Shown here in pieces: positions 32,068 through 63,847 of a stretch of 64,000 bases of DNA. Within the stretch, counting starts at the first letter, position 1; every line of letters starts with the position of its first letter. The stretch spans positions 186,001 through 250,000 of IMG/VR virus record IMGVR_UViG_3300027985_000843; one strand, written 5' to 3'. The notes beneath the pieces were generated by a model. It made no database searches. It saw only the letters and a program-made list of their open reading frames with translations, and was not told the DNA's origin. The position numbers and the translations under genes were made by a program.

Positions 32068-32074
32068 CGGTGTA
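32068..32074 (+). promoter_or_regulatory. CGGTGTA element 10 nt before ATG 32085
   Basis: Same motif and spacing on the plus strand. Confidence 0.65.
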
Positions 32075-32084
32075 TGATCCGATC

Positions 32085-32309
32085 ATGACTTGGGATGTCG
32101 TTGTTTCGGTCGTCTTCCTCTTGGCCGTCCTGCTGACCATGGCTCGGTGCTTCTACTCGACCTACAAGCACCACCGACAGGTCGCGGACTGGTCCAGGGG
32201 AATGGATGCCGAAAGAGCGGAAATCGTGAGGCTGTCAAACGAGGGTCGGACGGATGAAGCGATCAAGTTGTGGGAAGCCCACCTCAAGAAACACCCACCC
32301 CTACCCTAG
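32085..32309 (+). CDS. Small membrane protein on the opposite strand
   Basis: N-terminal hydrophobic helix VVVSVVFLLAVLLTMA. CGGTGTA lies exactly 10 nt upstream of ATG 32085. Confidence 0.6.
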   Translation: MTWDVVVSVVFLLAVLLTMARCFYSTYKHHRQVADWSRGMDAERAEIVRLSNEGRTDEAIKLWEAHLKKHPPLP

Positions 32310-32983
32310 GTGCACTCATCTCCGCCCCGACCGGCCCACTGGGGCAACCGTACTTCTCGCAGGATATTGAACCGCTTACCATCCGAGATGGCCGAGAAGA
32401 TCCTGTAGTAGGGCTCGAAGGTTTCGTCTTCCTTGGCCGCTCTCTCCAGCACCTTGGCCGCCTTGAAGAAACGGTGTCTGACGCGACCCTGCGTCAGGTT
32501 GAGTCTGGATGCCACCTCGGACTGGCACGTGGTCTCCCACATGCCAACGAGGATGTCCACGTCGATGTTCCGCGTCTCCTTCGCCTTCATGGGGAAGATC
32601 TTCGGCAGGTCGCGTCGAAGATCTTCCTCGGTCACGTCGGGGATCGACAACAGGAACTTGATCCGTTGGATACCTCGGTCGAGGCGATAGCTCACGGCCG
32701 CCTGCGTGATGCCGAACATCGTGGCGATGTCAGCCTGACGCTTATTGCAGCAGAAATATAGGTGAATGAGGTCCGCTTCCCTTTCGGGAATACGATCCAG
32801 AAGGGGGGCTATGCGTTCCTCGAAGTCGTTGCCGTCTCCGAGGAACTCTTGCATGTCCTCAACAGAGACCTGGCACTCCTCGGCGTCGAGGTAGTCTTCC
32901 TCGTCATCGCATCTGGGATCGTATGACGGGAATCGGCTTGCCAACTCGTTGGGATCGATGGGGATGACGTACCCTGCTGCCAT
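32306..32983 (-). CDS. Tandem sigma70 region-4-like HTH protein
   Basis: LDRIPEREADLIHLYF..QADIATMFGITQAAVSYRLDRG and QSEVASRLNLTQGRVRHRFFKA. No region 2 is visible. Confidence 0.7.
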   Translation of the reverse strand: MAAGYVIPIDPNELASRFPSYDPRCDDEEDYLDAEECQVSVEDMQEFLGDGNDFEERIAPLLDRIPEREADLIHLYFCCNKRQADIATMFGITQAAVSYRLDRGIQRIKFLLSIPDVTEEDLRRDLPKIFPMKAKETRNIDVDILVGMWETTCQSEVASRLNLTQGRVRHRFFKAAKVLERAAKEDETFEPYYRIFSAISDGKRFNILREVRLPQWAGRGGDECT

Positions 32984-33026
32984 AAGAATCTCCGTGGACC
33001 CATCCCCGATCCCTACCGAACCCCTC

Positions 33027-34829
33027 TCACCCGAGAAGGATTCCGAGTAGCGGCGTCGGGTTCGTGTTTATCTCTCGCAGCCGGCTGGCTGCTGTTTCTA
33101 CATCCGGATTTGGGTCTGTCACGGAGACGTCGACGTCCGCGAGGGACATCAGCTCTCGATTTAGTCTGACCTGAGGTTCAGACGTGCGCAACCTTTCATA
33201 CTGTCCTTTGCTTACACCGGTCAAGCCCGACGAGTAGACACCATTGATCGTACCGTGAGCTTGGACCAGGGAGCACAGGACCTTCTTTGGGACACGCGGC
33301 ACCCCAGGCAGGTTGTCGGAACTGTCCCCGTAGAAGGCTCGCAAGTCCAGGAGTGTAGACGGGCCAACCCCAAAGGACTTCTTCACCGAGTCCGGGTCGT
33401 GCACCACATCTTTTCGACTCCCCACCCCTGGCACAAGCATGTAGGTTGTCTCCGTGACTAGAGACAGAAGATCACGATCCGTGGAAAAAATCAAGTTGTG
33501 TTGTTCCTTAAGTGAACCGCGCACGAGTGTCGCCAGGACGTCATCAGCCTCTTCACCCGTGTTTTCGGCCTGCCACACCCCACACAAGGGCAGGATCGAC
33601 CGAAGGTAATCCACCTGCGCAACGAAGCCCTCCGGGACCGGAGGCCGCTGAGCCTTGTACTCCCCGTAGACGGCCTTGCGTCGCCTTGAGCTACCATCCC
33701 ACGCCACATACAGTCGGGCTTCCGGATAACGCTTCTTGAGGGAACCGAGAGACCGGAGAAAGCCAAGGACAACACCTGTCGGTCGACCCTGGTCATCCTT
33801 GAGTTCGGACATGCCCGGAGCATGGAAGCATCGGCGAGCAAGGTTGTTTCCGTCCACCAAGACGTTCTGGATGACTTTCACGTTGTTGTCTTTCTTTCTC
33901 TTGGCGACGCGGTGCGCCAAAACTTCGATTTCCTTCTGTAGGAGGTTGATGCGTTCCAGGACGTCCTCGAACCAATACAGCTCCAAGAGCTTGCTCTCGA
34001 TGTGCTGTGTACGTCGATCGAAGTGCGTGTTGTAGAACGTCTTGACGAACGCCAACCTGGGACTGAACTGCGCGTTCCACTCGTCCAGCCATACGAATTG
34101 ATGGAGCTTGTCTTGAAGGTCGTCGGCACGGGACTTCTGATAGAAGGACCGGACGAAGGCGACTCGCTTGGACAACGAGCCGTCCCACGCAGATATGGAC
34201 TCAAGGTCCGACCACTTCCGACGAAGTTCGTCACCCCGAGACGCGTGCCACCGGAAGACCGGCCGTGCGAGACGTGTCCAGCCCCGCAGGGCCGTAAGTC
34301 GACTGAAGAACCCAGACAACGGAGTCCTCTTGACCACTTGTAGAAAGGGTCGAGGCAGCGTCACGATTGTCTGCTTGCTCCGTAGCTTGACGAACACCTG
34401 GACCATCCCCTGCTCGGGGATGTCCTCGACAACAGTGGCCTCGATGTTCTGGTAGGGGCCCGAACAGATCATCACTCGATCGCCCACTCCAATGCCCTGG
34501 TCGATCTCCTGATGAAGTTGCGACTGCATCCCAAGGATCTCTTCCTGGGAGATCAGAGACAGGCGCCCCTGCCCGTCTCTCAAGGCCGACTGCACGAAAC
34601 GGCTGTCCTCGATCCGTAGGTATGGGGCCGGATTCCCAGTGTACTCCACGAAGATGTAACCCTCGACAAGGTAATGGATGACCTTGTCCTCGCCTACCTG
34701 TGTCACAGCGGCAGGCACGAAAACGTTGGCCTTGGGGTCTTTCAAAGCACTCCGGAGGCCCCTCTTCAGGACCTCAGGGTCTTCCCCCTCGCTTCTGGGA
34801 GACAGCTCGAAAACAACCCAACCTGCCAT
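33027..34829 (-). CDS. NusG-like (NGN+KOW) domain fused to a Pol I-type 5'-3' exonuclease/flap nuclease
   Basis: N-terminus WVVFE..VFVP..LVEGYIFVE..GDRVMICSGPYQNIEATV. C-terminus LVDGNNL..WDG..YKAQR..EADD..STDRD..GDSSDNLPGV. Start moved to ATG 34829 (TGATG overlap with dnaX). Confidence 0.85.
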   Translation of the reverse strand: MAGWVVFELSPRSEGEDPEVLKRGLRSALKDPKANVFVPAAVTQVGEDKVIHYLVEGYIFVEYTGNPAPYLRIEDSRFVQSALRDGQGRLSLISQEEILGMQSQLHQEIDQGIGVGDRVMICSGPYQNIEATVVEDIPEQGMVQVFVKLRSKQTIVTLPRPFLQVVKRTPLSGFFSRLTALRGWTRLARPVFRWHASRGDELRRKWSDLESISAWDGSLSKRVAFVRSFYQKSRADDLQDKLHQFVWLDEWNAQFSPRLAFVKTFYNTHFDRRTQHIESKLLELYWFEDVLERINLLQKEIEVLAHRVAKRKKDNNVKVIQNVLVDGNNLARRCFHAPGMSELKDDQGRPTGVVLGFLRSLGSLKKRYPEARLYVAWDGSSRRRKAVYGEYKAQRPPVPEGFVAQVDYLRSILPLCGVWQAENTGEEADDVLATLVRGSLKEQHNLIFSTDRDLLSLVTETTYMLVPGVGSRKDVVHDPDSVKKSFGVGPSTLLDLRAFYGDSSDNLPGVPRVPKKVLCSLVQAHGTINGVYSSGLTGVSKGQYERLRTSEPQVRLNRELMSLADVDVSVTDPNPDVETAASRLREINTNPTPLLGILLG

Positions 34830-36337: not shown

Positions 36338-36340
36338 GTG

Positions 36341-36856: not shown

Positions 36857-36857
36857 G

Positions 36858-40644: not shown

Positions 40645-40922
40645 TTTTCCTCCTTGTCGAACTCTTCCAAAGCGCCCTCGACCTCTTGCAGATCTTGCTC
40701 GAACGAAGTGAGGAGAGTCTCCAGCTCCGCATGGGCCTGGTCTCTCTGCTCCTTGAGCCGACGAGGGTCGAAGCCGGCGTCTTCGATCTCCTTGCCGATG
40801 TCGGAAAGTTCCTGCATGCGAGCTTCGAGCTGGCCTCTGAGCTTGTCCCTCTTACGAGTGACGCTTGCGTGTCGGGTGAGAGCATTCTCTACCCGTTGTT
40901 TCAGTTGAGCGACTGTTGCCAT
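40641..40922 (-). CDS. Coiled-coil protein (93 aa)
   Basis: Continuous heptad pattern. CGGTGTA lies 10 nt upstream of the ATG. Confidence 0.7.
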   Translation of the reverse strand: MATVAQLKQRVENALTRHASVTRKRDKLRGQLEARMQELSDIGKEIEDAGFDPRRLKEQRDQAHAELETLLTSFEQDLQEVEGALEEFDKEEK

Positions 40923-40932: not shown

Positions 40933-40939
40933 TACACCG
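40933..40939 (-). promoter_or_regulatory. CGGTGTA element 10 nt before ATG 40922
   Basis: Recurring motif. An SD-like AGGAG is also present here. Confidence 0.55.
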
Positions 40940-41854
40940 CTACGACCGCTTCTTGGCTATCTTTTGGACGACCGACGCTCCCCAGGTACACCGGGAAGGG
41001 GTCGCGAACTCGCAGAATCGACAGTTGTCCTCATTCGCCTTGGGTTTGAACAGCCCTTTGGCGAGAGCCATCTTGTCGGTCTCGTCCAAGTCCGGAATCC
41101 TTGCCGACAGCTCTTCGATCGAGTCCAGGGCCGCGAGGACGTCCTCCAGCAACTGGTCCGTGTCGGCCTGCGAGAACTCCACCCAGTCGATACTACGAGG
41201 GGGAGTGAATCGCCAGTACAGAAACCCCAGCTTGTCGGGCAGCCGGCCATGCTGCAACTGGTACAGCATCCCGTACCAGTAGAGCTGCCGGGGGTCCACG
41301 TACTTGCCACCCCACTTCGAGCCCTTGCCGTCAAGGATGATCAGGTCCTTGTGGGGGGCAATTCGACGGATGATGAAGTCCGCCCGCCCCGCGATCTTGT
41401 GGCCCTTGACGACCTGGTCCAGCTTGACCTCTGCACGGGCGTACGGGCCGAGGAATCGACCGAACTTGATGCTGTCAATCCCACGAGCGATGGACTTTCG
41501 AACGTCATCGATCAGCTCTTCCTTGTCCGCGTACATCCCGCGAGGGTTCTGGCCCTTGCCTTCACCCTTCCACTTGATGATGCCGCATTTGCCGTCCCAT
41601 GACGGGGACGTCTGATCTCTGATGACCTTGTCCACCGTGGGGCGGACCTTCCGCAGGAGCTTGTCCCTCACAGACGCGGGATCTCGCCACAACTCCTCGT
41701 TGTAGAACTCCTCGAAGATGATCCCGATGACCGAACCGTACAGGGACCCGCCCTTGTCCTCAGGCTCGTCCATCTCCGTCTTGTTGATGTACTTGTGCCA
41801 GAACGCGTAAGCACACGAGCTGAACAGCTTGAATCCGGAATACGAGATGTACAT
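40940..41854 (-). CDS. PD-(D/E)XK nuclease, Cas4/AddB-like with four Cys
   Basis: SYS..SSCAY, GRADF, ILDGKGS, QLYWY and CRFCEF..C. Confidence 0.85.
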   Translation of the reverse strand: MYISYSGFKLFSSCAYAFWHKYINKTEMDEPEDKGGSLYGSVIGIIFEEFYNEELWRDPASVRDKLLRKVRPTVDKVIRDQTSPSWDGKCGIIKWKGEGKGQNPRGMYADKEELIDDVRKSIARGIDSIKFGRFLGPYARAEVKLDQVVKGHKIAGRADFIIRRIAPHKDLIILDGKGSKWGGKYVDPRQLYWYGMLYQLQHGRLPDKLGFLYWRFTPPRSIDWVEFSQADTDQLLEDVLAALDSIEELSARIPDLDETDKMALAKGLFKPKANEDNCRFCEFATPSRCTWGASVVQKIAKKRS

Positions 41855-42835
41855 CTACTTTGCCTCCCTCGCCCTCTCCAGGTAGCTTAGGGCGCGGTCC
41901 CGAACTTCCGGGGCGAAGCCCAGCCCCCGAATGGTCGTGGTCACGTCACCATCGGAAGACGCACCGACCTCTTTCTGGAGACGCTCTACGAACTGCGAGA
42001 TGATCGCACCCTCTTGCTCGCGTCTCTGTTTCCGGACTACGTCGAAGACCTCTTCGGCCGGCGGGACACGAAGGGGAATGGTCCCCACAGTCAGGGTCCC
42101 GTCGTCCACCTCAATAAGGGCCACCTGAGGAATCCGAGTCATGTTCTCGTTGTTCAGGGATCCTCGCGACACAGCCCCGGGGTTGACGAAGTACCGACCA
42201 TCGATCCGAACTATCCCCTGGTCCTTGTGCCAGTGGCCGAAACAGCAGACGTCGGGGCCGCCCTCGTAAACGAGGTCCTTGTAGGCGAACACCTCTTCCC
42301 CATAGAAGTCTCGCGTCTCTTCCTGGGGCGGGGGGTTCTCCGAGGCTAGGGCGTGGATGATGAAGATGAGAACATCCTCGTCCCCACGTTCGACAGCCTT
42401 GAAGTCATCGAGGGTCCGAACGAGGCTGTAGGGAAAGCCCACCACCCGGACCTTCATGCCGCCGTCCTCGAAGGTGGTGTCGGTCATACGTTGAATTACA
42501 CCGGCGGCGAACAACACTTGCAGAGGCTGTCGTTCAAGAGTGTCGAGGTTGTTGTAGGCGATGTCGTGGTTGCCGATGTTCAGGTAGACAGGACACGGGT
42601 ACGCGGCGTGGATCTCCGCCGCCCTTGCCACCAGGTAGTGACTGTTGCGGGTGGGCGCCTTGATGTGAAAGAAGTCCCCGCCGTCGAGAATCGCCTTCGC
42701 GCCGTACTTCCGGGCCAAGCTGCCGATCTGTTCCAAGCTGGCCCACACCTCCGACGGATAGTCCGCCTTCCAGGAGTCCGGGTTCTTGTCGGTGGCGTGG
42801 ACGTCCGTTCGGAAGATGAAAGCCAGGTGACCCAT
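41855..42835 (-). CDS. SbcD/Mre11-like metallophosphoesterase nuclease
   Basis: TDVH, GGDFFH, IGNHD and FGHWH motifs. Start moved to MGHLAF. Confidence 0.9.
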   Translation of the reverse strand: MGHLAFIFRTDVHATDKNPDSWKADYPSEVWASLEQIGSLARKYGAKAILDGGDFFHIKAPTRNSHYLVARAAEIHAAYPCPVYLNIGNHDIAYNNLDTLERQPLQVLFAAGVIQRMTDTTFEDGGMKVRVVGFPYSLVRTLDDFKAVERGDEDVLIFIIHALASENPPPQEETRDFYGEEVFAYKDLVYEGGPDVCCFGHWHKDQGIVRIDGRYFVNPGAVSRGSLNNENMTRIPQVALIEVDDGTLTVGTIPLRVPPAEEVFDVVRKQRREQEGAIISQFVERLQKEVGASSDGDVTTTIRGLGFAPEVRDRALSYLERAREAK

Positions 42836-46180: not shown

Positions 46181-47032
46181 CTACACGTTGTCGAGCATGT
46201 CCGAGAAGTCTTCGTCAGAGACGTCCTCCCCGGCCGGCTCGCTCACGCCCAACTTGATCTTCAGGTCGGCGGTCGACATCTCGCGGAACGGCTGAAGTTC
46301 CTTGTACACGCTGCACGCCGATTGCAGCACCATGTCACGGAACTTGTCGTTCTTGACCCACAGGGCCTTGCCGGCGCCATCGAGCTGGAAGTTCTGGTAC
46401 TCTGCGTTCTCGCAGGTCAGCAGAACGTCCTGCGTGGCGATGCTCAGATCGTTCGATCTGAGTCCGTCGGCGACCTTGTGCAGACGACCATAGATGCGGG
46501 GAGAGAAGCGCCAGGGCTTGACCTGCCAGCCGTCCTTGAGGAGGTTCTTGTTCAGCTCGCCGTCCTTGTTGGTCGGGTAGATCAGCAACACGGTGTTGAA
46601 GTACGTCTTGGCTTCTCCAAGCTGCTCCCACACCTTGTCGGCTTCCTTGCCATCCATGCCCAATCTGGAGACGACGTACCCGACGCCCTCCTTGTAGTGG
46701 GCGACGATGCGTCTGAACTGAATCTGGTTCGTGTCGAGCTTCTCCCACTCCTCCAGTTCGTCCACGGACTTGCCCAGTTTCTCGGCCTGTTCCTTGAGGG
46801 CGGCCGCGCCGACCTTCTTCAGTTCGGCACCGGAGATGGATGGGTTTTCCTTCTTGGCCGCTCGCATCGCAGTGATGTCGAGGGGGTGGAAGTAGACGAA
46901 GGCCACGCGGTACGTGAACCCCTTCTCGCCCTTGAATCTCTCCTTCTTGTCGGACTTGGCGTACTTCTTGTCCTCTTCGCCGAGACCAACGTCATCACCA
47001 TAATCGCCAAAGACATCTTCACTTCCAGCCAT
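46181..47032 (-). CDS. Probable single-stranded DNA-binding protein
   Basis: Aromatic-rich core with acidic C-terminus DVSDEDFSDMLDNV, located next to RecA and RuvC. Confidence 0.6.
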   Translation of the reverse strand: MAGSEDVFGDYGDDVGLGEEDKKYAKSDKKERFKGEKGFTYRVAFVYFHPLDITAMRAAKKENPSISGAELKKVGAAALKEQAEKLGKSVDELEEWEKLDTNQIQFRRIVAHYKEGVGYVVSRLGMDGKEADKVWEQLGEAKTYFNTVLLIYPTNKDGELNKNLLKDGWQVKPWRFSPRIYGRLHKVADGLRSNDLSIATQDVLLTCENAEYQNFQLDGAGKALWVKNDKFRDMVLQSACSVYKELQPFREMSTADLKIKLGVSEPAGEDVSDEDFSDMLDNV

Positions 47033-47112: not shown

Positions 47113-47119
47113 TACACCG
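47113..47119 (-). promoter_or_regulatory. CGGTGTATAAA element upstream of the SSB gene
   Basis: Intergenic copy of the motif, 80 nt before the ATG. Confidence 0.6.
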
Positions 47120-47126: not shown

Positions 47127-48320
47127 TCAAAGCTCGTCGAAAATGTTCGACAAGTCGTCCTCTTCTTCAGCGTCAGGACCATCCAAAAATTGCGTGATGG
47201 CAGGGTCGACGTCCGTGGACTCAGGGCTTGCGTCGGAATCAACGGGTGAATCACCTTCACCCATCGACAGCACGTACTCGCCCATCGACAACGTGGCATC
47301 GGAATCGAACTTGCGCAGGTCCTGTTCGACCACGGGAGCTTGCTCTGTCACGAGAGCAGGCTCGACTGACTTCTGGGCCTTCTTGCCCTTGCTCTTGGGT
47401 TCCGGTTCCAGGGGCGGATGGTCGTCCAAGTTGACGTCGTCGAAGTCCAGTTCGGCAAGCTTCAACAGAGCATCTGTTGTAGTTTCCGGTTCGGGCTCAT
47501 CTGCCGCCGGTTCTTCCTCGTCAACCTCAGAATCGGCTAGGGGCTCTTCTTCGTCGACCTCTGAGTCCGCCGCCGGTTCCACAGACTCCTCAACCGGTTC
47601 CACAGACTCCCCGGTCTCTTCGGAGTCCTCGGCACCTTCTTCGACCTCTTCAGAGTCCTCAGCACCTTCCTCGGTTCCATCCTCGACCTCTTCGGAATCC
47701 TCGGCACCCTCGGACAAGGCACCCTCTTCCGCCTCCATAGCCGAATTGAAGATGGCGTCCAGGGACCTTTCGTCGAGTTCAGGATCCTTGGGGGGCTGCT
47801 TGCTCCGTGGGTTGTGCCCGTCATCACCACCGAGGCTGGTCTCGTCCCCGTAGAAAGCTCCGGTTTTGATTTCGGTCTGGATGAGGCTGCGTTGCAGTCG
47901 AATGGCTGACATCGTGTGTTCCAGCTCTCGATGCCGGTGCCGAATGGCCTTCTCTATTGCCTGAGCCTCTCGAATCCTCTGCCCGAGCTTCAGAATCTCC
48001 GCCCGAGCCTCTCGCTCGATGACATTGATCATTGCTTCCCGGTCACGAACGGCCGGTAGGGCTTTGACCCGCTTGTCCGTCGCCATCAGGTCGTCGGACC
48101 GAATCTGAAACAACGTTTCCCTGGCATTCAGGTCACTCTCCAAGGTGCCCAGGTGTCGAAGGACTTCCTGGATCATGACGCCGGTCTCGTTGAGATACGA
48201 CCTCGTTGTGAAGATGGCCTTCTGTAGGTGGGCAGGACCTCTGGAGGTCGGGTCTGGATCTAGCTCGACTACGAGCTTTGGCAGACGATCCAGTATTTGT
48301 AAAACTCTTTGGGGATTCAT
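47127..48320 (-). CDS. Coiled-coil protein with a long acidic repeat tail
   Basis: Helical N-terminal half followed by EEGAEDSEEV-type repeats. Confidence 0.65.
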   Translation of the reverse strand: MNPQRVLQILDRLPKLVVELDPDPTSRGPAHLQKAIFTTRSYLNETGVMIQEVLRHLGTLESDLNARETLFQIRSDDLMATDKRVKALPAVRDREAMINVIEREARAEILKLGQRIREAQAIEKAIRHRHRELEHTMSAIRLQRSLIQTEIKTGAFYGDETSLGGDDGHNPRSKQPPKDPELDERSLDAIFNSAMEAEEGALSEGAEDSEEVEDGTEEGAEDSEEVEEGAEDSEETGESVEPVEESVEPAADSEVDEEEPLADSEVDEEEPAADEPEPETTTDALLKLAELDFDDVNLDDHPPLEPEPKSKGKKAQKSVEPALVTEQAPVVEQDLRKFDSDATLSMGEYVLSMGEGDSPVDSDASPESTDVDPAITQFLDGPDAEEEDDLSNIFDEL

Positions 48321-48679
48321 TGTTCGTCACCCTGAACCTTGCTGTTTCCAAGGAATCTCGCGATGTCCGCGTCGTACTTTCGGAAAGCCGACTCAAGTTC
48401 GGCCCGAGCCTCCACTTGATTCATGGCGCCCCGAGCCACAGCATCACGAAGGACCTCAGAAGTCACTCGCTTGCTCAGCACACAAGACACGATGCGAGAT
48501 TCTTCCGGCGTGAATTGCTTGCCTCGAAGGTCGACGGTTCGGGTGACCATACACCACTTCTTGGTGCCTGTAGGATCCCGGGTCTCGACCGAAAACCCTA
48601 CAGTCACCTTGTCCTCTTCGATGCTGTCACTGATTTCTCTGAGCCGGGCTTTCTGCTCAGACGATAGCTTGAGCGCCAT
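48317..48679 (-). CDS. Hypothetical protein (120 aa)
   Basis: Start moved to MALKLSS. CGGTGTA lies 9 nt upstream. Confidence 0.6.
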   Translation of the reverse strand: MALKLSSEQKARLREISDSIEEDKVTVGFSVETRDPTGTKKWCMVTRTVDLRGKQFTPEESRIVSCVLSKRVTSEVLRDAVARGAMNQVEARAELESAFRKYDADIARFLGNSKVQGDEQ

Positions 48680-48687: not shown

Positions 48688-50841
48688 CTACACCGTTACC
48701 AGCTGCCGAAGGACGGTATTTCGCTGAATGACTCGGTTGTTGTCGATGGCCTTTTGGATCGCTGTCGAGCTGCCGATCAACCACACAGACTTACGAGCAC
48801 GAGTCACGGCGGTGTACAGCAAGTTCCGCTGAAGCATCCGACCTTGGCTCATCGTCACCGGCAAGATGATGTGGTTGAACTCACTGCCCTGCGATTTGTG
48901 CACGCTGATGGCGTAGGCCAGGCGGAGCTTCTCTTCCGCAGCATGGTAAGTGAAAGACACCTCTGTGTCTAGGTCACCCTCGCCAATACCGTGAACGCGA
49001 ACGAACAGGTTCTCGCGATCGATCCCTACCAGCTTCCCCATGTCTCCGTTGTACACACCGAGTTCGTAGTCATTCTGTACAACCATCACACGGTCGCCCA
49101 CGCGAAAGTGCTGGTTTCCCTGCTTCCACTCCTTGGGGCCGCTTGGATTGAGCTTGTCTCGAAGATGGTCGTTGAGGGTGTTGACCCCCACCCGACCCTC
49201 GTACTTGGGACTGAGAACCTGGAAGTTGTCGTTGCGATCCTTGAGTTTCACCGCCATCGCGACGATCAAAGCAAGGATGCGATCCTCGTCGTCCATGGAC
49301 ACGAAGTGGAATTCTGTCTTCTCTTTTGGCCCCTGGAGGGTGGGCATCTCGCCCCGGTTGATCCGGTGAGAGTTGGCGACGATCTCTCCCTTCTCAGACT
49401 GCCTGAAAATCTGGGTCAGCCTCACGTGAGGAACGCCATCACAGGCGACCAGCTCCCGCAGGACATTCCCTGGCCCTACTGACGGAAGCTGGGCGTCGTC
49501 ACCGACGAAGACAAGGTAGGTGTCGGGCCGGAGTGCCGACAGGAGCCGATAGAACAGCTCTTGGTCCACCATGCTCATCTCGTCGATGATGACCGCATCG
49601 ACGACATACCGACTGTCTGCGTTGTACCCCCAGGAGTTCCCATCGTACCGAAGGGCGCGGTGGATGGTGGAAGCCGGATGGCCTGTCACGGACGATAGCC
49701 GCTTGGCTGCGATCCCTGTGGGGGCCATGAGAGTGAACGAAGCCCCGGTCGTCTCGAACAAGCGAACGATGGCCCTCACGGCAGTCGTCTTGCCTGTGCC
49801 GGGGAGACCCGTGAGCACAAGCACGCGGTTGTTGCTCAGCGTATCGACGGCCTGTCGCTGAGCCTCCGACAGGGTCATCCGGTTGGACTTCTCGTATTCA
49901 GCAATGAAGGTGCCGACATCGATGCGGAGGTCGTTGGCTTCTTCGGCCAGAGCCGCTCGAAGACAGGCCGCCGCCTCCCTCTCGTACATGTAGAGGTCGT
50001 CCAGATAAATCCCCACCTCGTCTTCCAGCTTCACGCTCTTGGACTCCACAAGGGTCTTGATGGCCTCGCGGTAGTCGCCTCGCGGGGGAATCAGGTTGTA
50101 GCTGGAGAAGACGGCCGGCACGACCTCTTTGAGTTCGCCTCTGCGCAGGAACAGGTGCCCCTGCTTGGAACTCTCGCGAAGAGCCAACAGAATCCCGCCC
50201 TGGACCCTCTCGGGTGACCCAAGGTTGAACCCTAGCTTCAATGCGAGCTTGTCGACCCTCGCGAAGTCGTTCATGACCTCCAGAAGACGGTAGGGGTTGT
50301 TCTTGAGGATGGTCGCTGCGTTCTCCCCGAACCGGCCCATGGCTAGCTGGATCTCAACACCATGGATGCCGCCCTCTTGAAGTAGCATCGACAGGTCCCT
50401 CGTAGACAGTGCCCGTTCCCACCCCAGAATGGCCTCTTGAACGGCCTCAGGGTCCCCAATGGGTGGTTGGGCCTCCAACAGCTCGTTCGGGCGTTCTGAG
50501 AGCGTACGGAAGACGCTGGGACCGTTCGCGCTGATGCCCCGAAGCACGTCGGAGTTGTTGAAGCCTGGGATGCAGTTCCACAAGAACTGTCGGACCTCTT
50601 GAGGGTAGCGGGCCCACGGCTCCCAGTTGCGGATGGCGAACTGCTTACCGTATTTGTTGTGCTTCGCCCATTTGCCGATAAACCTGATGGTCACGCCGGT
50701 CACGAGACGAGACAGCCCGAAGACATTGCCCTTCGCCGTGATGTTACCCATCTCTTCCGAAAACAAGGCGAGGATGTAGAAGTCGCCGCTCTGGAAGATG
50801 ACCTTGTCAACCTTCCCTTCGATCGTCACCAATTCTGCCAT
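48688..50841 (-). CDS. recD2: RecD2-type SF1B helicase
   Basis: N-terminal OB and HhH region, GLPGTGKTT, APTGIAA, DEMSM, GDDAQL, SVHKSQGSEF and LYTAVTR. Confidence 0.93.
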   Translation of the reverse strand: MAELVTIEGKVDKVIFQSGDFYILALFSEEMGNITAKGNVFGLSRLVTGVTIRFIGKWAKHNKYGKQFAIRNWEPWARYPQEVRQFLWNCIPGFNNSDVLRGISANGPSVFRTLSERPNELLEAQPPIGDPEAVQEAILGWERALSTRDLSMLLQEGGIHGVEIQLAMGRFGENAATILKNNPYRLLEVMNDFARVDKLALKLGFNLGSPERVQGGILLALRESSKQGHLFLRRGELKEVVPAVFSSYNLIPPRGDYREAIKTLVESKSVKLEDEVGIYLDDLYMYEREAAACLRAALAEEANDLRIDVGTFIAEYEKSNRMTLSEAQRQAVDTLSNNRVLVLTGLPGTGKTTAVRAIVRLFETTGASFTLMAPTGIAAKRLSSVTGHPASTIHRALRYDGNSWGYNADSRYVVDAVIIDEMSMVDQELFYRLLSALRPDTYLVFVGDDAQLPSVGPGNVLRELVACDGVPHVRLTQIFRQSEKGEIVANSHRINRGEMPTLQGPKEKTEFHFVSMDDEDRILALIVAMAVKLKDRNDNFQVLSPKYEGRVGVNTLNDHLRDKLNPSGPKEWKQGNQHFRVGDRVMVVQNDYELGVYNGDMGKLVGIDRENLFVRVHGIGEGDLDTEVSFTYHAAEEKLRLAYAISVHKSQGSEFNHIILPVTMSQGRMLQRNLLYTAVTRARKSVWLIGSSTAIQKAIDNNRVIQRNTVLRQLVTV

Positions 50842-52781
50842 CAGAGCTTCCCAACCATCCCCAGGAAGTTTTCCTCGGAGATGCATTCGGTGTTGTTCTT
50901 GCGGGCCGCCTTCGCCTTGGAGGACGTCGAGTCAGGGTCGGCCATGACGAGATAAGTCAGTCCTTTGACCACGCTCTTCTTCACAGTGCCGCCCGCCTCC
51001 TCCGCCAACCGGATGAGGTCTGTTCGTTTCATGTTTGAAGTCCCTGTGAAGCACACGGTCTTACCTGTGAGAGCCCCTACCGAGCGCTCCTTGACACCAA
51101 CCAGGCCAACAAGATCATCCAACATGTCCCCGTGACGAGCCAGCCACTTCGTGAGCGACTGGGCCCGCTTGGGACCTACTCCTGGGATGTTCGTCAGCTC
51201 TTGCAGGGTCGCAGCCTTGAACCTGCCCACGCTGTCGTAGCCTGCATCTACGAGCAGACGCATCGTGCTCGTGGCACACAACGGAACGGCCAGGGCACCC
51301 ATGAGCTGTTCCAAGGGCAACGGGGTCACAGCCCACAACTGGTCAACAGCCTTCTTTGCAGACGCAACGCCCATTCGATCCAAGTCCTGTACCTGCTCCA
51401 CCTTGAGTCGATACAGGTCTGGCACCGAGTTGACCAAGCCCTCAGCCACAACCTTCGAGACGAGGGTGGGGCCCCACTCCAGGATGCCCAGCTCGTGGAC
51501 CCACTGCCGGATACGGCCTTCTACCTGTGCCGGGCACTCGCCCGTGTTCGGGCAGATGACGAACTCCCCACTTCTTTCCGTGGGGGCGCCGCACTCAGGA
51601 CAGTGGGTGGGCGGCTGGGAGGTCTGGCCCGTCCCCTCGACCACGGAAGCCACACGGGGGATGACGTCGTTGGACCGGCCTACGAGCACGCGGCACCCGA
51701 CATCGAACCCGATCTGCTCGATATACCTCTGGTTGTAGAGCGACGCTCGACTCACCTCCGCCCCAAGAAGCCGCACCGGCTTGAATTCGGCCACGGGTGT
51801 GATGATGCCGGTACCACCCACCTGATCGATGCGAGCGGTGACGACCGTCTCCCTCGTGACCATGTTGAACTTGAATGCGATGGCACCAAGAGGACGGTCG
51901 TTCTTCTCCCCGAGACTTAGCTGGTGGGCCATGTCATTGATCCGGACCACAAGCCCGTCGATCTCATAGGGCAGGGTCTCACGGGTGTCCTTCTGGTACT
52001 GTTCCCAGATGTCTTGGGGCGCCATGACGCCAGGGACGGCAACCGACGGAGTGGTGATGCCAGAGGCGGCCGACAGGTAATACTTGGGCGTGCTGAGGCC
52101 CATCTCCTGGAGGAACTCGAACTGTTGTTTCTCCGTTTCGAAGTCGAGCCCATCGAGCACCTGGTACACCAAGACGGTGAGATGCTCAGAACCCACACCG
52201 TCGAGGCGTTTAGCAATGCCACTCGCGGCATTCCGGGGGTTCTGCATGGTCGGGAAGTGCTCGATCAGGTCGTCCTTGTACAGGAGAATCTCCCCCCGGA
52301 ATTCAGCCGTGATAGGGGCCTTCAGTGTGGGTAGCACGCACTTCATTCGAGCCACGTTCGGCGTGATGTCCTCCCCCAACTGGCCGTCACCTCTGGTGAG
52401 CCCCTGGGTAAACTTCCCGTTCTCGTACCGAAGGGAAACGCTGATGCCGTCCAGCTTCTCCGTCACCAGCAGCCACTCACACTTCTCGCTAGGGCGTGAG
52501 ACAGCCCGAACCCACGCCGCCATCTCGTCTGGGGTCTGTACCTTGGACAAGGACCCCATGGGGATGAGATGGCGGACCTTCGGCCAATCCGACACAGGAG
52601 GGGCGCCCACCGCAGTCACGACCGGATGGTCCTCTCTCAATTCGGCAAGCTCGTCCACCCACGCGTCGTAAACGTCGTCAGGAACACTCGGCTGATCGTT
52701 GTAGTAGTCGTGTCGAGCCTGAGCGACTTTGGCCTCAAGCTCCTCGACACGTTCTTGGTCAAGCTGGTCGAAGAGATCCAT
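50841..52781 (-). CDS. ligA: NAD-dependent DNA ligase
   Basis: KLDG, TRGDG, RGE, DGLV, C4 zinc finger and a C-terminal BRCT domain. Confidence 0.96.
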   Translation of the reverse strand: MDLFDQLDQERVEELEAKVAQARHDYYNDQPSVPDDVYDAWVDELAELREDHPVVTAVGAPPVSDWPKVRHLIPMGSLSKVQTPDEMAAWVRAVSRPSEKCEWLLVTEKLDGISVSLRYENGKFTQGLTRGDGQLGEDITPNVARMKCVLPTLKAPITAEFRGEILLYKDDLIEHFPTMQNPRNAASGIAKRLDGVGSEHLTVLVYQVLDGLDFETEKQQFEFLQEMGLSTPKYYLSAASGITTPSVAVPGVMAPQDIWEQYQKDTRETLPYEIDGLVVRINDMAHQLSLGEKNDRPLGAIAFKFNMVTRETVVTARIDQVGGTGIITPVAEFKPVRLLGAEVSRASLYNQRYIEQIGFDVGCRVLVGRSNDVIPRVASVVEGTGQTSQPPTHCPECGAPTERSGEFVICPNTGECPAQVEGRIRQWVHELGILEWGPTLVSKVVAEGLVNSVPDLYRLKVEQVQDLDRMGVASAKKAVDQLWAVTPLPLEQLMGALAVPLCATSTMRLLVDAGYDSVGRFKAATLQELTNIPGVGPKRAQSLTKWLARHGDMLDDLVGLVGVKERSVGALTGKTVCFTGTSNMKRTDLIRLAEEAGGTVKKSVVKGLTYLVMADPDSTSSKAKAARKNNTECISEENFLGMVGKL

Positions 52782-52791: not shown

Positions 52792-52798
52792 TACACCG
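52792..52798 (-). promoter_or_regulatory. CGGTGTA element 10 nt before the ligA ATG
   Basis: Member of a recurring motif family (see findings). Confidence 0.65.
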
Positions 52799-55753: not shown

Positions 55754-56695
55754 TCACGCTCCGAAGGATGTGGCTAGGTAGGTCTTGATGTGAAAGGGCA
55801 GGTGGATGCTTCCACGCATGCGGTTCCGAAGCTGAGCAAACCCAACGAGAAGGTTGTCCAGTCGCTTGGCCCCCAGCCTCTCGCGGAACAAGGCGAGCTG
55901 GTCCCGCATGTCAACGTTGGCAAGTCGTTCGGGAGCATACGGCAGAACAGTCAGGTCCCGAAGAAGGTACTCCATAAACCGGAGCCCTTGGGCCAAGTCG
56001 TCTTCCACGGCGTCAATAGTTGAGAACAAGGGCGACAGGTCTCCGACCAACCCCATCTCAAGGAGGTTGAACATCTTCGTTCGAAGCGACAATCGGCCGG
56101 ACGCGAGGATCTGATACGCTCGGCCTACGGAACCCTCTGAAAGACGTGTGCACACAAGTGCCTTAGTGGCGTCGTTCGTGTGCTGACTCAAAAAATTCAA
56201 GATGAACGATTCGGACAAGGGGCGATAACGCACAAGACCACACCGAGAACGGATAGTCGGTATGACCGCTTCCGACGAGGTGGCAAGCAAGAAGAATCTC
56301 GTGGTGGGAGGAGGTTCCTCCAACGTCTTGAGCAGTGCGTCGGACGCTGAGACGGTCATAGTATCCGCCCCGTCAATGATAACGTAACGCACAGGAACCA
56401 TCGACGGGTATGAGGACACCAGTCGGGTAATGTCACGCACGGCATCCACTCCGATGTCCTTCTTGTCGTCAGGACGCAGAGTGATCAGATCGGGATGCAC
56501 CTCTTTGGAGATCCGGAAGCAGTTGTCGTCCTCCGGGTTACCTTTGGAGAAGGCTTCCTTTGCCGCCTCTACTACAGAGTACCGGCGACCCACCCCCTCA
56601 TCACCAATCAGCAACAGTGGCGTTGTCAACGCCCCGTCAACAACACGCCTCAGGAACCGAACACCCTCACTCTGTTCCTGGACATCGTTCAGCAT
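55754..56695 (-). CDS. holB: DNA polymerase III delta-prime subunit
   Basis: LLIGDEGVG, HPDL, IGVDAVR, LLKTLEEPP and TIRSRC. Start moved to MLNDVQ. Confidence 0.9.
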   Translation of the reverse strand: MLNDVQEQSEGVRFLRRVVDGALTTPLLLIGDEGVGRRYSVVEAAKEAFSKGNPEDDNCFRISKEVHPDLITLRPDDKKDIGVDAVRDITRLVSSYPSMVPVRYVIIDGADTMTVSASDALLKTLEEPPPTTRFFLLATSSEAVIPTIRSRCGLVRYRPLSESFILNFLSQHTNDATKALVCTRLSEGSVGRAYQILASGRLSLRTKMFNLLEMGLVGDLSPLFSTIDAVEDDLAQGLRFMEYLLRDLTVLPYAPERLANVDMRDQLALFRERLGAKRLDNLLVGFAQLRNRMRGSIHLPFHIKTYLATSFGA

Positions 56696-56867
56696 CGGCA
56701 CTCTCCAAAAGCGGGACTTGTGGCGGCGCCTCAACAGGCACCAATTGCATCACCAGCATGAAGTGCTGTCCGCAGTTTGGACAGACGAGCCGATGAGGTT
56801 CCTTGCCGCTTCTCTCCAGTGCTTCTTTACACCGAAGACACCGGACGAGGCCCAAAGAATCGGACAT
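56667..56867 (-). CDS. Small Zn-ribbon protein
   Basis: CLRC..CPNCG. Confidence 0.55.
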   Translation of the reverse strand: MSDSLGLVRCLRCKEALERSGKEPHRLVCPNCGQHFMLVMQLVPVEAPPQVPLLESADAERCPGTE

Positions 56868-58294: not shown

Positions 58295-58319
58295 CCGAGC
58301 GTTCCAACAAGAAGGTCCG

Positions 58320-60397
<2,078 letters not shown>

Positions 60398-60398
60398 G

Positions 60399-60830
60399 CT
60401 ACTCCTCATCCTCCGAATCGTTCCAACCAGGGTCATCGAGCAGACGTGACCAACAAGTCGGGGACTCGGGCTGTGGGTCCAGACCAAAGATCCCCTGAAG
60501 CTCTGACTGGACCCGGCTCTCCGAAGTGTTCTGACGAAGGCCCAGACAGGATCGGATCACTTCCCCCAACGGACGAGAAGTCAGCTTGATGCGCCTGTAT
60601 GTACCATCAGGCAGAACCTCGATGATGTTGTGAGCCTTGAAGTTCAGGGCCTTGGGGAGGCTGGTAACCCTGTCCACCACGCGAGCCGATGGGCATAGGA
60701 TCGACAACCGGCCATCAAAGTGGAAACGACAGTCAGGGTACAGCTCTTGAATGCGGATGAGGGCCTCACGTCGGCGCTCCAGCTGTGACAGCAAGACGGT
60801 GACTTCACGAGCTTTGGAGGCTAAAGGCAT
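60399..60830 (-). CDS. Hypothetical protein (143 aa)
   Basis: CGGTGTA lies exactly 10 nt upstream of the ATG. Confidence 0.6.
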   Translation of the reverse strand: MPLASKAREVTVLLSQLERRREALIRIQELYPDCRFHFDGRLSILCPSARVVDRVTSLPKALNFKAHNIIEVLPDGTYRRIKLTSRPLGEVIRSCLGLRQNTSESRVQSELQGIFGLDPQPESPTCWSRLLDDPGWNDSEDEE

Positions 60831-60840
60831 GAGGGATCTC

Positions 60841-60847
60841 TACACCG
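60841..60847 (-). promoter_or_regulatory. CGGTGTA element 10 nt before ATG 60830
   Basis: Recurring motif with the same spacing. Confidence 0.65.
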
Positions 60848-60873
60848 ACAGGCAGCCTGGCTTGTTCGTTACG

Positions 60874-61461: not shown

Positions 61462-61524
61462 GGTAGTTACCGTTTCTTTCTCACGACTGTCTCCATAGAC
61501 GCAAGAGCTTCTCGCGTCTGACCT

Positions 61525-61553
61525 ATGAAAAAGCCCCCGACTCTCGGAGGCTT
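61525..61553 (-). terminator. Intrinsic terminator directly after the tmRNA
   Basis: Minus strand AAGCCTCCGA-GAG-TCGGGGGCTT, then TTT. Confidence 0.8.
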
Positions 61554-61919
61554 TGGTGGAGATGTGGGGAATCGAACCCCAGTCCAAGACAGCTTCAAAG
61601 TCGTCTCGCTCGCGTGCGTAGCTGGTCTACCCTTCCAGCAGGGTCACTGGCCTTTCAACCAGCATGCGGGTATTCACATTAATCTCATCCGGTGGGCATC
61701 GGACCCCTTGCAGTTTTTCACCGGACCAGCTCGTGTGGTTTACACCTCGGGGGTACTCGAACTCCTCCCCCTTCGATGGCCTGTCTCTACCTAAGCAGCG
61801 ACGGGCATTGCAGAATTGTCATTCGCAATTGTGTTCTGTCTGGTTCTTCAAGGGGGGCCTGACAAACCCCCTGCACGATCAACGTCCTCTCCACTACCCT
61901 GTCGAAACCGATCATCCCC
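61554..61919 (-). ncRNA. ssrA: tmRNA, 366 nt, tag (A)ANDNSAMPVAA
   Basis: 5' GGGGATGATCGGTTTCGAC and 3' GGGGTTCGATTCCCCACATCTCCACCA. The tag frame 61826-61791 reads gcg aat gac aat tct gca atg ccc gtc gct gct tag. Confidence 0.95.
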
Positions 61920-61964
61920 AGAGGATACGGCCATTGTAGACCCCCGAAGGGGGCGGACCGTACC

Positions 61965-62051
61965 TGGTGCTCAGGGAGGGACTTGAACCCTCACGTCCAC
62001 AAGGGACAACAGTTTTTGAAACTGCCGCGTCTGCCATTTCGCCACCTGAGC
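61965..62051 (-). tRNA. tRNA-Leu(CAA)
   Basis: Cloverleaf with anticodon loop TTCAAAA, long variable arm and encoded CCA. Confidence 0.93.
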
Positions 62052-62139
62052 AAATGTCCGCCGACCGAAGTGCCGGCAGACTGGGGGCCAAGTTTCCCTG
62101 GCACCTTCCACCACTTCCTGACCCGAGGGTCGGGGAAGA

Positions 62140-62370
62140 TCAGAACCTTATATCATGAACCCTACACCACTCGGCATAGTTGACCCACACAAATCGGTCA
62201 TGCTTGCAGTTCGGGCATGGCCTCTTGCTGGGCCTGGACCGCCATGTGTGGCCGCAGCTACAGCACTTGTAGACAGCACAACCACTGCACTGACATTCCG
62301 TACGCCACGAGCCGGACCCGGGGAACCCTTCCTCGACGGTCGTTCTCGTGATTGTCCTGCGCTTATTCAC
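62140..62370 (-). CDS. Small Zn-finger protein starting at tRNA position 76
   Basis: CCSCGH..CPNC..VWVNY. The GTG start follows the CC of the tRNA 3' end. Confidence 0.55.
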   Translation of the reverse strand: MNKRRTITRTTVEEGFPGSGSWRTECQCSGCAVYKCCSCGHTWRSRPSKRPCPNCKHDRFVWVNYAEWCRVHDIRF

Positions 62371-62446
62371 GGTGCGTCCCCCCGGATTTGAACCGAGACA
62401 CGCCCAGTTATGAGCTGGGGGCTCTGACCTATTGAGCTAGGGACGC
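62371..62446 (-). tRNA. tRNA with CAT anticodon (elongator Met or Ile2)
   Basis: Cloverleaf with loop CTCATAA and G1:C72. It lacks the three consecutive G:C anticodon-stem pairs of an initiator. The 3' end reads ACCG rather than ACCA. Confidence 0.88.
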
Positions 62447-62628
62447 GCACACTCCGCACACCGAGCCTTCTCTTTGGGCGCTTCTCCACGATACACCTTC
62501 TGGTGGCCGCATTCCAGCGTCACCGTGATGATGTCGATCCCTCGACGCCAGCTGAACGCGCCACCCCGAACCGACGTGCGATCCGGTTCCTTCTCGACCT
62601 TGCGGCCTACAATCGCTCGGTATGTCAT
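62437..62628 (-). CDS. Small Zn-binding protein with its stop codon inside the tRNA
   Basis: LECGH..RCAEC. CGGTGTA lies 10 nt upstream of the ATG. The TAG is at tRNA nt 8-10. Confidence 0.65.
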   Translation of the reverse strand: MTYRAIVGRKVEKEPDRTSVRGGAFSWRRGIDIITVTLECGHQKVYRGEAPKEKARCAECARP

Positions 62629-62638
62629 GGGAGGACCA

Positions 62639-62645
62639 TACACCG
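62639..62645 (-). promoter_or_regulatory. CGGTGTA element 10 nt before ATG 62628
   Basis: Recurring motif with the same spacing. Confidence 0.65.
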
Positions 62646-62646
62646 C

Positions 62647-62865
62647 TCAGTCGAGCGGTACCCCCTCCAGCGTCCTGTGGATGGTCCGTATGGCCCACCC
62701 CACCGCATCTTTCAAGGGGACTCGATGGAACTCCTTGCCACACTCCGTACACTGACGGAAAAACTCTCTCGTCTTGAGGTCGACATGATTCCACAAGACG
62801 CCCTTACATCCCGGGTCCTCACAAGGAGGGCCTACGGGCTCGAACTGGGGGATATTTGTTGTCAT
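62647..62865 (-). CDS. Small Zn-ribbon protein whose ATG shares the A of the tRNA CCA
   Basis: MTTNIP..CEDPGC..CTECG. Confidence 0.6.
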   Translation of the reverse strand: MTTNIPQFEPVGPPCEDPGCKGVLWNHVDLKTREFFRQCTECGKEFHRVPLKDAVGWAIRTIHRTLEGVPLD

Positions 62866-62951
62866 GGTGGCCCTCCCGGGACTCGAACCCGGACACCCAC
62901 GAGGGGTAGCGGGGTTTAAGCCCGCCGCGTCTGCCATTTCACCAGAGAGCC
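62865..62951 (-). tRNA. tRNA-Leu(TAA)
   Basis: Cloverleaf with loop CTTAAAC, long variable arm and CCA. Confidence 0.93.
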
Positions 62952-62952
62952 G

Positions 62953-63028
62953 TGGTAGCCGGTGCGAGGATCGAACTCGCCTAGAACTGCTTGTAAAACA
63001 GCCACCGTCGCCAGACGGTTCACCGGCC
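62953..63028 (-). tRNA. tRNA-Val(TAC) with atypical D arm
   Basis: 7-bp acceptor stem, 5-bp T stem, loop TTTACAA, A73 and CCA. D arm is ACCGTC-TGGC-GACGGT. Confidence 0.8.
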
Positions 63029-63550
63029 GTGAAGCACCTCCTGCACCCACAAGGTGTTGAGGCGGAGAATCTCCTCCCCGATGCGACGATTGATCTCTCG
63101 GTGGGCCTCGTACATACGGGGCGTAAACTTCCTGTATCGCAAGTGATCCATAGCGGTGCAATCATTCTTGACCCTAGCCCACCCCCACTTGGCGTCAACC
63201 TTCTGACCCCACAACAGAAGAGGCACCGCTTCATACCCGTCGTAGACGTAGTACGGGACGGGTTCGGGGATGCCCTTGAACGCCCGTCGACGGCCAATTT
63301 TACGGGCGATCCACCGAACGACGCAGAAGCCATACTCGCGATCCCGGCCACCAGCTCCATACTCGAAGCCGATACGGCACTTCCCACGGTCGTACACCAG
63401 CTCCTTCTCGGTGAGAGGGCCGTGGATGCCGGAGGTCTCCCAGCTCAAGCCCATGAAGGTGTGAAAGGGTCGGTAGTTCAGGCTCAAGAACTCGACCATC
63501 CTGGCCTGAGCCTTGCGACTCCGGCAGGGCACTGCGATGGCGTAGCCCAT
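63020..63550 (-). CDS. Hypothetical protein (176 aa) with its stop codon inside tRNA-Val
   Basis: Starts 1 nt after the upstream stop. The TGA is at tRNA nt 7-9. Confidence 0.65.
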   Translation of the reverse strand: MGYAIAVPCRSRKAQARMVEFLSLNYRPFHTFMGLSWETSGIHGPLTEKELVYDRGKCRIGFEYGAGGRDREYGFCVVRWIARKIGRRRAFKGIPEPVPYYVYDGYEAVPLLLWGQKVDAKWGWARVKNDCTAMDHLRYRKFTPRMYEAHREINRRIGEEILRLNTLWVQEVLHGR

Positions 63551-63551
63551 G

Positions 63552-63830
63552 CTAGTCCTCGTTCAAGGTGCCCTTGTTGAGGATCAAAAGGCTCATAATC
63601 ACGAACCCCTCTTCAAGACCAGGGAACTCCCCGTGCTTCAAGAGGTGCGTCACCTTCGCGACCACATGTCGACCGGTGAACTTCTTCGTGATGGGGTTCC
63701 ATTCATGCAGGTCCAACAGAGACCCGACCTCGAAGCCACGGTCATCCTTCCGCAGCTCGTAGGTCTTGATACCGTCCCAGACAGCCATGAAAGCCGAGGG
63801 CCATGTCTTGAGCCTATGTAGCTTCTGCAT
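63552..63830 (-). CDS. DUF3850/ASCH-like (PUA-fold) protein
   Basis: HRLKTWP..F..V..G.KTYELRKDDRGFEVG..L.L.EW..TGR. TGGTGTA lies 10 nt upstream of the ATG. Confidence 0.8.
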   Translation of the reverse strand: MQKLHRLKTWPSAFMAVWDGIKTYELRKDDRGFEVGSLLDLHEWNPITKKFTGRHVVAKVTHLLKHGEFPGLEEGFVIMSLLILNKGTLNED

Positions 63831-63840
63831 GACCCTAAGA

Positions 63841-63847
63841 TACACCA
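63841..63847 (-). promoter_or_regulatory. TGGTGTA element 10 nt before ATG 63830
   Basis: Recurring motif with the same spacing. Confidence 0.6.

Follow-up and report, generated by a model that had tools for sequence, protein, structure and literature searches.

In canonical extended −10 promoters, a TG at −15/−14 is followed by one spacer base and no −35 element is needed. The late promoters of phage T4 (TATAAATA) are read by gp55, together with gp33 and the sliding clamp, on the host core enzyme. Promoters of extracytoplasmic function (ECF) sigma factors have the layout GAAC-N16-17-CGT. To our knowledge, the gene-regulatory signals of huge phages known from metagenomes only have hardly been described. 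The Thermus phages phiYS40 and Lalka27a produce mostly leaderless transcripts from class-specific TANNNT promoters; the middle and late promoters of phiYS40 and the late promoters of Lalka27a are in part without a −35 element, and most of the transcripts begin with the start codon's A or G (bioRxiv 10.64898/2026.04.20.719267). The late consensus of Lalka27a, TAGGGT with a C at −25, points to a phage factor by which the host polymerase is retuned (bioRxiv 10.64898/2026.04.20.719267). In Deinococcus-Thermus, a −10 element adjoining the open reading frame (ORF) is common (PMC12340547). Here we analyse a stretch of 64,000 nt (the window), bases 186,001–250,000 of the IMG/VR virus record IMGVR_UViG_3300027985_000843 (G000), a single linear contig of 371,739 bp with 59% G+C, in which the heptamer YGGTGTA (class 1) recurs at a fixed distance before start codons. 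Judged from the sequence, YGGTGTA is probably, at roughly 75%, the core of a −35-less promoter of this phage and its clade that gives rise to leaderless mRNAs.

Like the promoters of phiYS40 and Lalka27a, those of G000 would form a phage class with a −10-type element, a dispensable −35 element and a start at the start codon, which is predicted here. Unlike in the Thermus phages, the class-specific part in the G000 clade is a YGGTG block that abuts the TA, and some relatives can do without the T at −7. Members of the clade are also much larger (320–530 kb versus ~150 kb or less) and have a second, ECF-like leaderless class; the leaderless starts of G000 are predicted from its sequence. As in extended −10 (TGn) promoters, a short upstream extension would offset the missing −35 element. 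Yet, the TG of G000 lies at −14/−13, and the fixed bases number five (YGGTG) instead of two.

The motif shares with T4 late promoters a single short, near-invariant −10 element without a −35 element; in T4, a phage sigma-2-type factor works with the host core. However, the two sequences differ, the sigma-2-like protein of G000 evolves fast while the motif is invariant across the clade, and YGGTGTA does not stand directly ahead of core head genes. The resemblance to the Deinococcus-Thermus −10 motif lies in a TANNNT at a fixed short distance and in leaderless mRNAs beside genes led by a Shine-Dalgarno (SD) sequence. There, a degenerate TANNNT is used host-wide, whereas in G000 plain TANNNT without YGGTG shows no enrichment ahead of starts. 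Full-text searches of the literature found no description of a YGGTGTA motif. Four features set G000 apart from the known systems: its consensus, the register in which the upstream extension stands, how large and widespread the phages of the clade are, and the second, ECF-like leaderless class.

Spacing and geometry of the YGGTGTA motif

The window contains 27 copies of YGGTGTA, against an expected mean of 6.5 and a maximum of 13 in 100 shuffles, and the whole genome contains 190. With the gap defined as the number of nucleotides between the end of the motif and the start codon, the next ATG follows these 190 copies at 10 nt in 49 cases, at 11 nt in 21 and at 9 nt in 8 (78 copies at 9–11 nt), and each other gap occurs at most six times. 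When GTG starts are counted along with ATG, 90 copies lie 9–11 nt before ORFs of at least 40 aa. CGGTGTA ranks first among all 16,384 heptamers for an ATG at gap 10 or 11 (57 of 132 copies). If only ATGs that begin an ORF of 50 aa or more are counted, the spacing is found for 55 of 132 copies of CGGTGTA (p = 8e-71) and 18 of 58 copies of TGGTGTA (p = 2e-21), at a baseline of 0.011. The spacing enrichment on which the original prediction, made from the letters of the window, had staked its case is significant genome-wide. Single-base variants of GGTGTA show almost no spacing signal, including those in which the T or A of the TA is changed. Chance and base composition, considered as origins of the motif, are excluded by the shuffles and the heptamer ranking.

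In window coordinates, which are used below unless the contig is named, the (C/T)GGTGTA copies said to end exactly 10 nt before the ATGs at 32085 (+) and at 40922, 52781, 60830, 62628 and 63830 (−) all do so, and the ATGs at 48679 and 9641 likewise have the stated gaps of 9 and 11 nt. The same prediction held that the heptamer also falls inside genes by chance and that the spacing is the real signal. Genes contain ~60 copies, on either strand, a number near chance level; ~40 others are intergenic or close to gene starts.

In a profile anchored on the motif, y-C/T-GGTGTA is followed by T/G, G, any base, T, about six unconstrained bases and the ATG. At a gap of 10, the TA falls at −12/−11, the conserved T at −7 and the A of the ATG at +1, while YGGTG spans −17 to −13. 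The −10-type element of G000 is TA-k-g-n-T, with the T at −7 present in 59 of 90 sites. As in a sigma-70-type −10 element, a T stands at −12 and an A at −11; the definition of the motif itself makes this TA invariant. No −35 element was found in the G000 profile, where no position between −50 and −2, counted from the motif, reaches an information content of 0.12 bits. In G000 and three relatives (G002–G004), the gap distribution is sharply cut off below 9 nt and tails to 12–14 nt. This is expected from a fixed transcription start, since the ATG must lie at or after the start. Most sites are single and directional, and their orientation always agrees with that of the downstream gene; divergent gene pairs have TACACCG..CGGTGTA palindromes, such as TACACCGGTGTA or TACACCG-N3-CGGTGTA.

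Leaderless mRNAs should lack an SD sequence where other genes of the same genome have one, and this is what we found. On our map of 414 genes, made by codon usage, GGAG or GAGG stands upstream of 154 of 347 non-motif genes, with a peak at −13 to −9, versus 9 of 67 motif genes (Fisher p = 1e-6). In these few motif genes it is mostly too near the ATG. The start codons themselves appear to be real, since Pfam domains begin at residues 2–13 of the predicted proteins (ClpX zinc finger, ADP-ribosylglycohydrolase, DUF551, DUF3850 and DUF1848). In the DUF3850 protein (ATG 63830) the domain begins at residue 5, and the start lies 18 nt past a tRNA gene, too close for a leader to fit in between. The motif precedes 25 of the 62 first genes of same-strand runs, but only 42 of 350 internal genes (p = 5e-7). 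A detector of terminators made of a hairpin and a T-run was uninformative (41% upstream of motif sites versus 34% at random positions).

These data are consistent with a mechanism in which a bacterial-type RNA polymerase, probably with the host core, would melt the DNA at the TA and start 10–11 nt after the A of the motif. At ~90 genes, the start position would be the A of the start codon, and the mRNA, without leader or SD sequence, would be translated leaderless. At a smaller set (groEL, the phrog_2426 gene and the tRNA/tmRNA cluster), the same promoter would feed a leader of 25–110 nt. In both protein-coding cases that we read, the leader has its own SD sequence. The 813-aa phrog_2426 gene (9667–12108, −) has CGGTGTA at 12146..12152, 37 nt before its ATG at 12108, and a GGAG at 12117–12120, at 8-nt spacing. 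For groEL, the motif at 60018..60024 (−) lies 39 nt before the ATG at 59978, and a GGAG at 59987–59990 lies 8 nt before that ATG. Genes internal to operons rely on a normal SD sequence. Several independent computational lines speak for the proposed promoter, with TA at −12/−11 and a predicted start at the A of the ATG.

The original prediction had also assigned the motif to an early or middle class. This is only suggested by the gene content, in which genes for replication, repair and chaperones stand beside small unknown ones, while core head genes are missing. No copy precedes the capsid, portal, terminase or protease genes, as had been stated; however, copies do occur directly downstream of the capsid gene (12377–12383 and 12146–12152). 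Similarly, of the further copies placed upstream of vWA (von Willebrand factor A), SSB (single-stranded DNA-binding protein) and groEL genes, the groEL copy stands, but the vWA and SSB labels have no Pfam support: behind the copy at 56828–56834 lies a clamp-loader-like gene, and behind that at 47113–47119 a gene without Pfam match.

Conservation in huge phages and rival explanations

The motif is not confined to G000. The relatives G002–G004, found by searching IMG/VR with the palindrome of divergent pairs, are huge contigs of 363–529 kb with 52–64% G+C, and each has 164–187 proteins in common with G000, at a median identity of 45–48%. They have 82, 99 and 48 motif-N9-11-ATG sites, respectively, versus 4, 4 and 1 for the reversed pattern, which served as control. 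Among the related huge phages tested, 12 of 13 show 31–123 such sites versus 0–6 in the control; base composition, measured for four of them, ranges from 52 to 64% G+C. Conservation extends to individual genes. In G002–G004, 24 of 49 orthologues of motif-led genes bear the motif, versus 17 of 336 orthologues of other genes (p = 3e-14); it is retained at the ClpX orthologue in all three relatives and at the ligase orthologue in two (G002 and G004).

Several findings nevertheless weigh against a leaderless −10-type promoter. The T at −7 is present in less than 50% of the sites of G003 and G004, so that the fit to a sigma-70 −10 element is limited there to the TA. With its TG directly abutting the TA, the motif misses the register of the canonical extended −10 element by one base, and the near-absolute invariance of GGTGTA exceeds the usual strictness of a housekeeping-sigma −10 element. 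No RNA run was found to contain this sequence; the transcription starts, leaderless translation and the use of leaderless mRNAs by the host are predictions. Furthermore, CheckV puts the completeness of G000 at 78%, and a divergent phage RNA polymerase could be absent from the contig or have been missed by Pfam.

Such a polymerase offers an alternative explanation, in which the motif is its promoter, transcription starts in or right after the motif, and a leader of ~10 nt without SD sequence results. GGTGTA is indeed near-invariant and conserved over phages of 52–64% G+C, much like phage-polymerase promoters, and polymerases of their own are common in huge phages; the incompleteness of the contig adds to this. 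Yet, Pfam detected no Rpb2_6 or Rpb1_2 domain of multisubunit polymerases in G000, while it found both in control genomes. The search for a T7-type polymerase had no match in G000 and none in any control either, and is therefore uninformative. The sole ADFDGD string of G000 sits in a 155-aa ORF without family match. Moreover, the TA/T pattern and the spacing of 9–11 nt match bacterial −10 geometry, and the sigma-like genes of the phage imply use of the host core enzyme. With no phage RNA polymerase detected, the host core is the likely enzyme, and we consider a phage polymerase unlikely. The motif might also be mainly an operator, bound by a phage regulator such as a tandem helix-turn-helix protein and placed over weak promoters. 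The perfect palindromes at divergent sites would suit an operator, and so would the high conservation of a tandem sigma-4 protein with invariant recognition helices. This explanation seems quite improbable, however, because most sites are single, directional and oriented with the downstream gene, and because no alternative conserved element that could set the start was found within 50 nt.

Another possibility is that the motif acts at the RNA level as a substitute for the SD sequence, with GGUG pairing with CACC of the 16S rRNA 3' end. GGTG does belong to the full SD complement, and the narrow spacing resembles that between SD and AUG. But GGTG ends 12 nt before the ATG, far past the usual spacing, and the TA and the T four bases later play no part in pairing. 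The motif also stands 37–39 nt upstream of GGAG-bearing genes, and one copy ends 11 nt ahead of where the tRNA gene at contig 1355 begins. Its presence before SD-bearing leaders and RNA genes argues against a translational role, which we regard as very improbable indeed.

A −35-less promoter with leaderless mRNAs would extend this mode of phage expression from Thermus phages to huge phages, and hints at an efficient translation of leaderless mRNAs in their hosts. Leaderless starts tend to be misplaced by automatic gene callers, which look for an SD sequence. Across the clade, the motif could serve as a sequence-only tool to find transcription units, correct start codons and sort genes by regulatory class.

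Sigma-like proteins and a second promoter-like class

YGGTG might be read by a tandem sigma-4 protein that is conserved in the clade, by some other factor of the phage, or by the primary sigma factor of the host. The gene of the first (32306..32983, −) encodes 225 aa with two helix-turn-helix domains that resemble region 4 of sigma-70, and no sigma region 2. Its structural model (mean predicted local distance difference test score 74) matches the isolated sigma-4 domains of SigF, SigD and SigA but no sigma-2 domain, and a fold search found no analogue of the whole protein. The protein is 63–69% identical in G002–G004, where it ranks 5th of 134, 8th of 161 and 28th of 155 shared proteins (tblastn). 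A word search gave 982 related protein clusters, and 129 related stretches are present in IMG/VR. Both recognition helices are invariant in 39 sequences, and 12 of 13 genomes that encode the protein show the motif, down to 43% identity.

Conversely, the most distant branch of the sigma-4 protein (39–41% identity, 35–36% G+C) has the same helix residues but lacks the motif, which speaks against this protein as the reader; neither G015 (202 kb) nor the 20-kb neighbourhoods of the branch contained a single site. The co-occurrence of protein and motif is, in addition, confounded by shared descent. Because the evidence is mixed, we rate the tandem sigma-4 protein as a candidate reader at about one in four. 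If it were true, a sigma-4-only factor reading DNA beside the −10 element would be a new way to redirect RNA polymerase.

In 80 pooled stretches of ~20 kb around the sigma-4 gene, we found 13 motif sites versus 3 in the control, and the words recovered de novo were mainly conserved coding sequence. The sigma-4 module has few promoters, and whole genomes were therefore tested instead. Clade contigs of 421 kb and 324 kb also occur inside the bacterial metagenome-assembled genomes GCA_040961665.1 and GCA_040384165.1. In these contigs the sigma-4 gene lies among neighbours of conserved order, and inteins or LAGLIDADG insertions are present in some genes.

A blind scan for hexamers at fixed distances from ORF-opening ATGs recovered YGGTGTA and, besides it, GTAGTA at gap 5 and TCCGAAC at gap 28–29. 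Together these words form a second class (class 2), with an A/T-rich stretch, TCCGAAC, N17, CGTAGTA, N5 and ATG. G000 has 52 CGAAC-N17/18-GTAGTA sites, 43 of them with exactly N5-ATG. They cluster at contig 0–20 kb, 300–345 kb and 360–372 kb, before small ORFs (median 91 aa), and there are none inside the window. The layout CCGAAC-N17-CGTAGTA is that of ECF sigma promoters, with a GAAC-like −35, a spacer of 16–17 nt and a −10 that contains CGT. With CGTAGT as the hexamer, standard −10 geometry again places the A of the ATG at +1.

One class 2 site lies ~35 nt upstream of the phage's own sigma-2-like gene, whose 303-aa product has part of a sigma-70 region 2; this arrangement resembles ECF autoregulation. 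The protein is only 31–42% identical, over parts, in relatives that keep the YGGTGTA motif unchanged, and the word search found four relatives of it. Class 2 probably depends on this fast-evolving protein, which is a candidate for its cognate sigma factor. Unlike in ECF promoters, the predicted starts are leaderless at a fixed N5 and the −35 word varies by relative. The exact class 2 pattern of G000 is absent from G002–G004. Instead, each relative has a specific pair: the −35 words are CCTTAA, GATGGATC and TTGATTC, whereas the word near gap 5 is similar throughout (GTA-n-TA). At three class 2 promoters, at contig 362,881 (+), 364,819 (+) and 371,307 (−), a conserved AGGGTGTGGCGGGTGGGAG replaces the ATG, and these sites may encode small non-coding RNAs.

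A wider, still doubtful proposal is that leaderless expression is clade-wide, with an invariant, −35-less YGGTGTA class read by the tandem sigma-4 protein, which would retarget the host polymerase, and an ECF-like class in which the −35 word and a fast-changing phage sigma factor evolve together. If it holds, cosmopolitan phages of 320–530 kb would express many genes via leaderless mRNAs. The two proposed promoter/factor pairs are compact and amenable to in vitro testing.

The distant relative G001 (IMGVR_UViG_3300020202_000061, 347 kb) shares 16 proteins with G000 and lacks the sigma-4 protein. YGGTGTA is absent there, and TAAATA-N5-ATG and TTGACA-N29-ATG are found instead; 17 of its 108 TAAATA copies occur as CTAAATA(T)-N5-ATG. 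These spacings imply a leaderless geometry in G001 too, and TAAATA-N5-ATG resembles T4 late promoters.

G000 also has a handful of canonical −35/−10 sites, separate from class 1. Two perfect TTGACA-N17-TAGGCT-N6-ATG sites, at contig 162,234 (−) and 268,297 (−), combine canonical elements with leaderless geometry. Their genes encode a 430-aa protein with an N-terminal match to Ros/MucR zinc fingers and a LAGLIDADG endonuclease. Words such as GATGAAGATGAAAA and CAGATCCAGA recur between genes of the structural module, where they lie upstream of structural genes with an SD sequence, for example at contig 152,424–152,550, 166,560–166,697, 176,041–176,117 and 200,036–200,114. They may represent a third (late) promoter class or a repeat.

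Sites in the window, genome context and host

In the window, the plus-strand class 1 site CGGTGTA at 32068..32074 lies 10 nt before the ATG at 32085 of a 74-aa ORF (32085–32309). The others given here are all on the minus strand. A gap of 10 nt is also found for the motif at 40933..40939, before the ATG at 40922 of a 93-aa ORF that heads the same-strand run ending with the sigma-4-like gene; an additional copy is nearby at 40987–40993. The same gap separates the motif at 52792..52798 from the ATG at 52781 of the NAD-dependent DNA ligase gene (50841–52781), that at 60841..60847 from the ATG at 60830 of a 143-aa ORF (60399–60830), and that at 62639..62645 from the ATG at 62628 of a 63-aa ORF (62437–62628). 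The copy before the DUF3850 gene (63552–63830), at 63841..63847, also has a gap of 10 nt and abuts the 3' end of tRNA-Leu(tag).

Gaps of 9 nt occur at 48689..48695, before the ATG at 48679 of a 120-aa ORF (48317–48679), and at 42497..42503, before the ATG at 42487 of a 210-aa metallophosphoesterase-like gene (41855–42487), a site that the original prediction had missed. TGGTGTA at 9653..9659 stands 11 nt before the ATG at 9641 of the uracil-DNA glycosylase gene (8982–9641), and TGGTGTA at 12377..12383 stands 12 nt before the ATG at 12364 of a Cys-rich 64-aa ORF (12170–12364). Larger distances are seen at 47113..47119, ~80 nt upstream of a 283-aa gene without Pfam match (46181–47032), and at 56828..56834, from which a clamp-loader-like gene (55754–56734; Pfam DNA_pol3_delta2) is no more than 93 nt downstream. 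The motif at 62163..62169 has no ORF behind it and lies 111 nt upstream of tRNA-Leu(caa) (61965–62051) and 243 nt upstream of the gene for transfer-messenger RNA (tmRNA).

The head genes of the window include portal, terminase and protease-like genes and an HK97-type major capsid gene (12484–13365, −; 293 aa). The capsid protein is 91–94% identical across phages in which the median for shared proteins is 45–48%, an unusually strong conservation. A replication and repair module comprises RecA, a RecD-like helicase, the NAD ligase, clamp-loader subunits, a 5'-3' exonuclease and the uracil-DNA glycosylase, and groEL is present as well.

The window also has five tRNA genes and the tmRNA gene (61554–61919), with the tag ANDNSAMPVAA. 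Genome-wide there are 47 tRNA calls, counting a tta-anticodon call and the odd gg call, plus one tmRNA, and the standard code reads G000 well as a whole. According to ARAGORN, the tRNA at contig 1355–1430 (+) has the anticodon tta and is a possible UAA suppressor. An odd tRNA-like gene at 62953–63042 (−), for which ARAGORN calls two bases (gg) in the anticodon loop, adjoins tRNA-Leu(taa).

A run search found near-identical sequence only in DNA runs, which bear the labels hydrothermal vent metagenome or metagenome, and megablast of the window DNA gave no match among INPHARED phages. The nearest relatives of GroEL are 42–48% identical and scattered over unrelated phyla, and they did not point to a host. 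The Ros/MucR-like domain and the tmRNA tag recall Alphaproteobacteria, a possible lead to the host. The CRISPR repeat of the phage had zero exact matches in GTDB species genomes. This repeat of 36 nt, CTCAAAGGTGGCCCACGACCTATTGAATGGTGGGAC, occurs ~19 times in an array in the region of contig ~349,108–352,950. The array follows a 764-aa ORF whose best match to a solved structure is Cas12m (E = 4e-20). At its far end the array bears a class 1 motif, and a single stray repeat is present near contig ~6,000.

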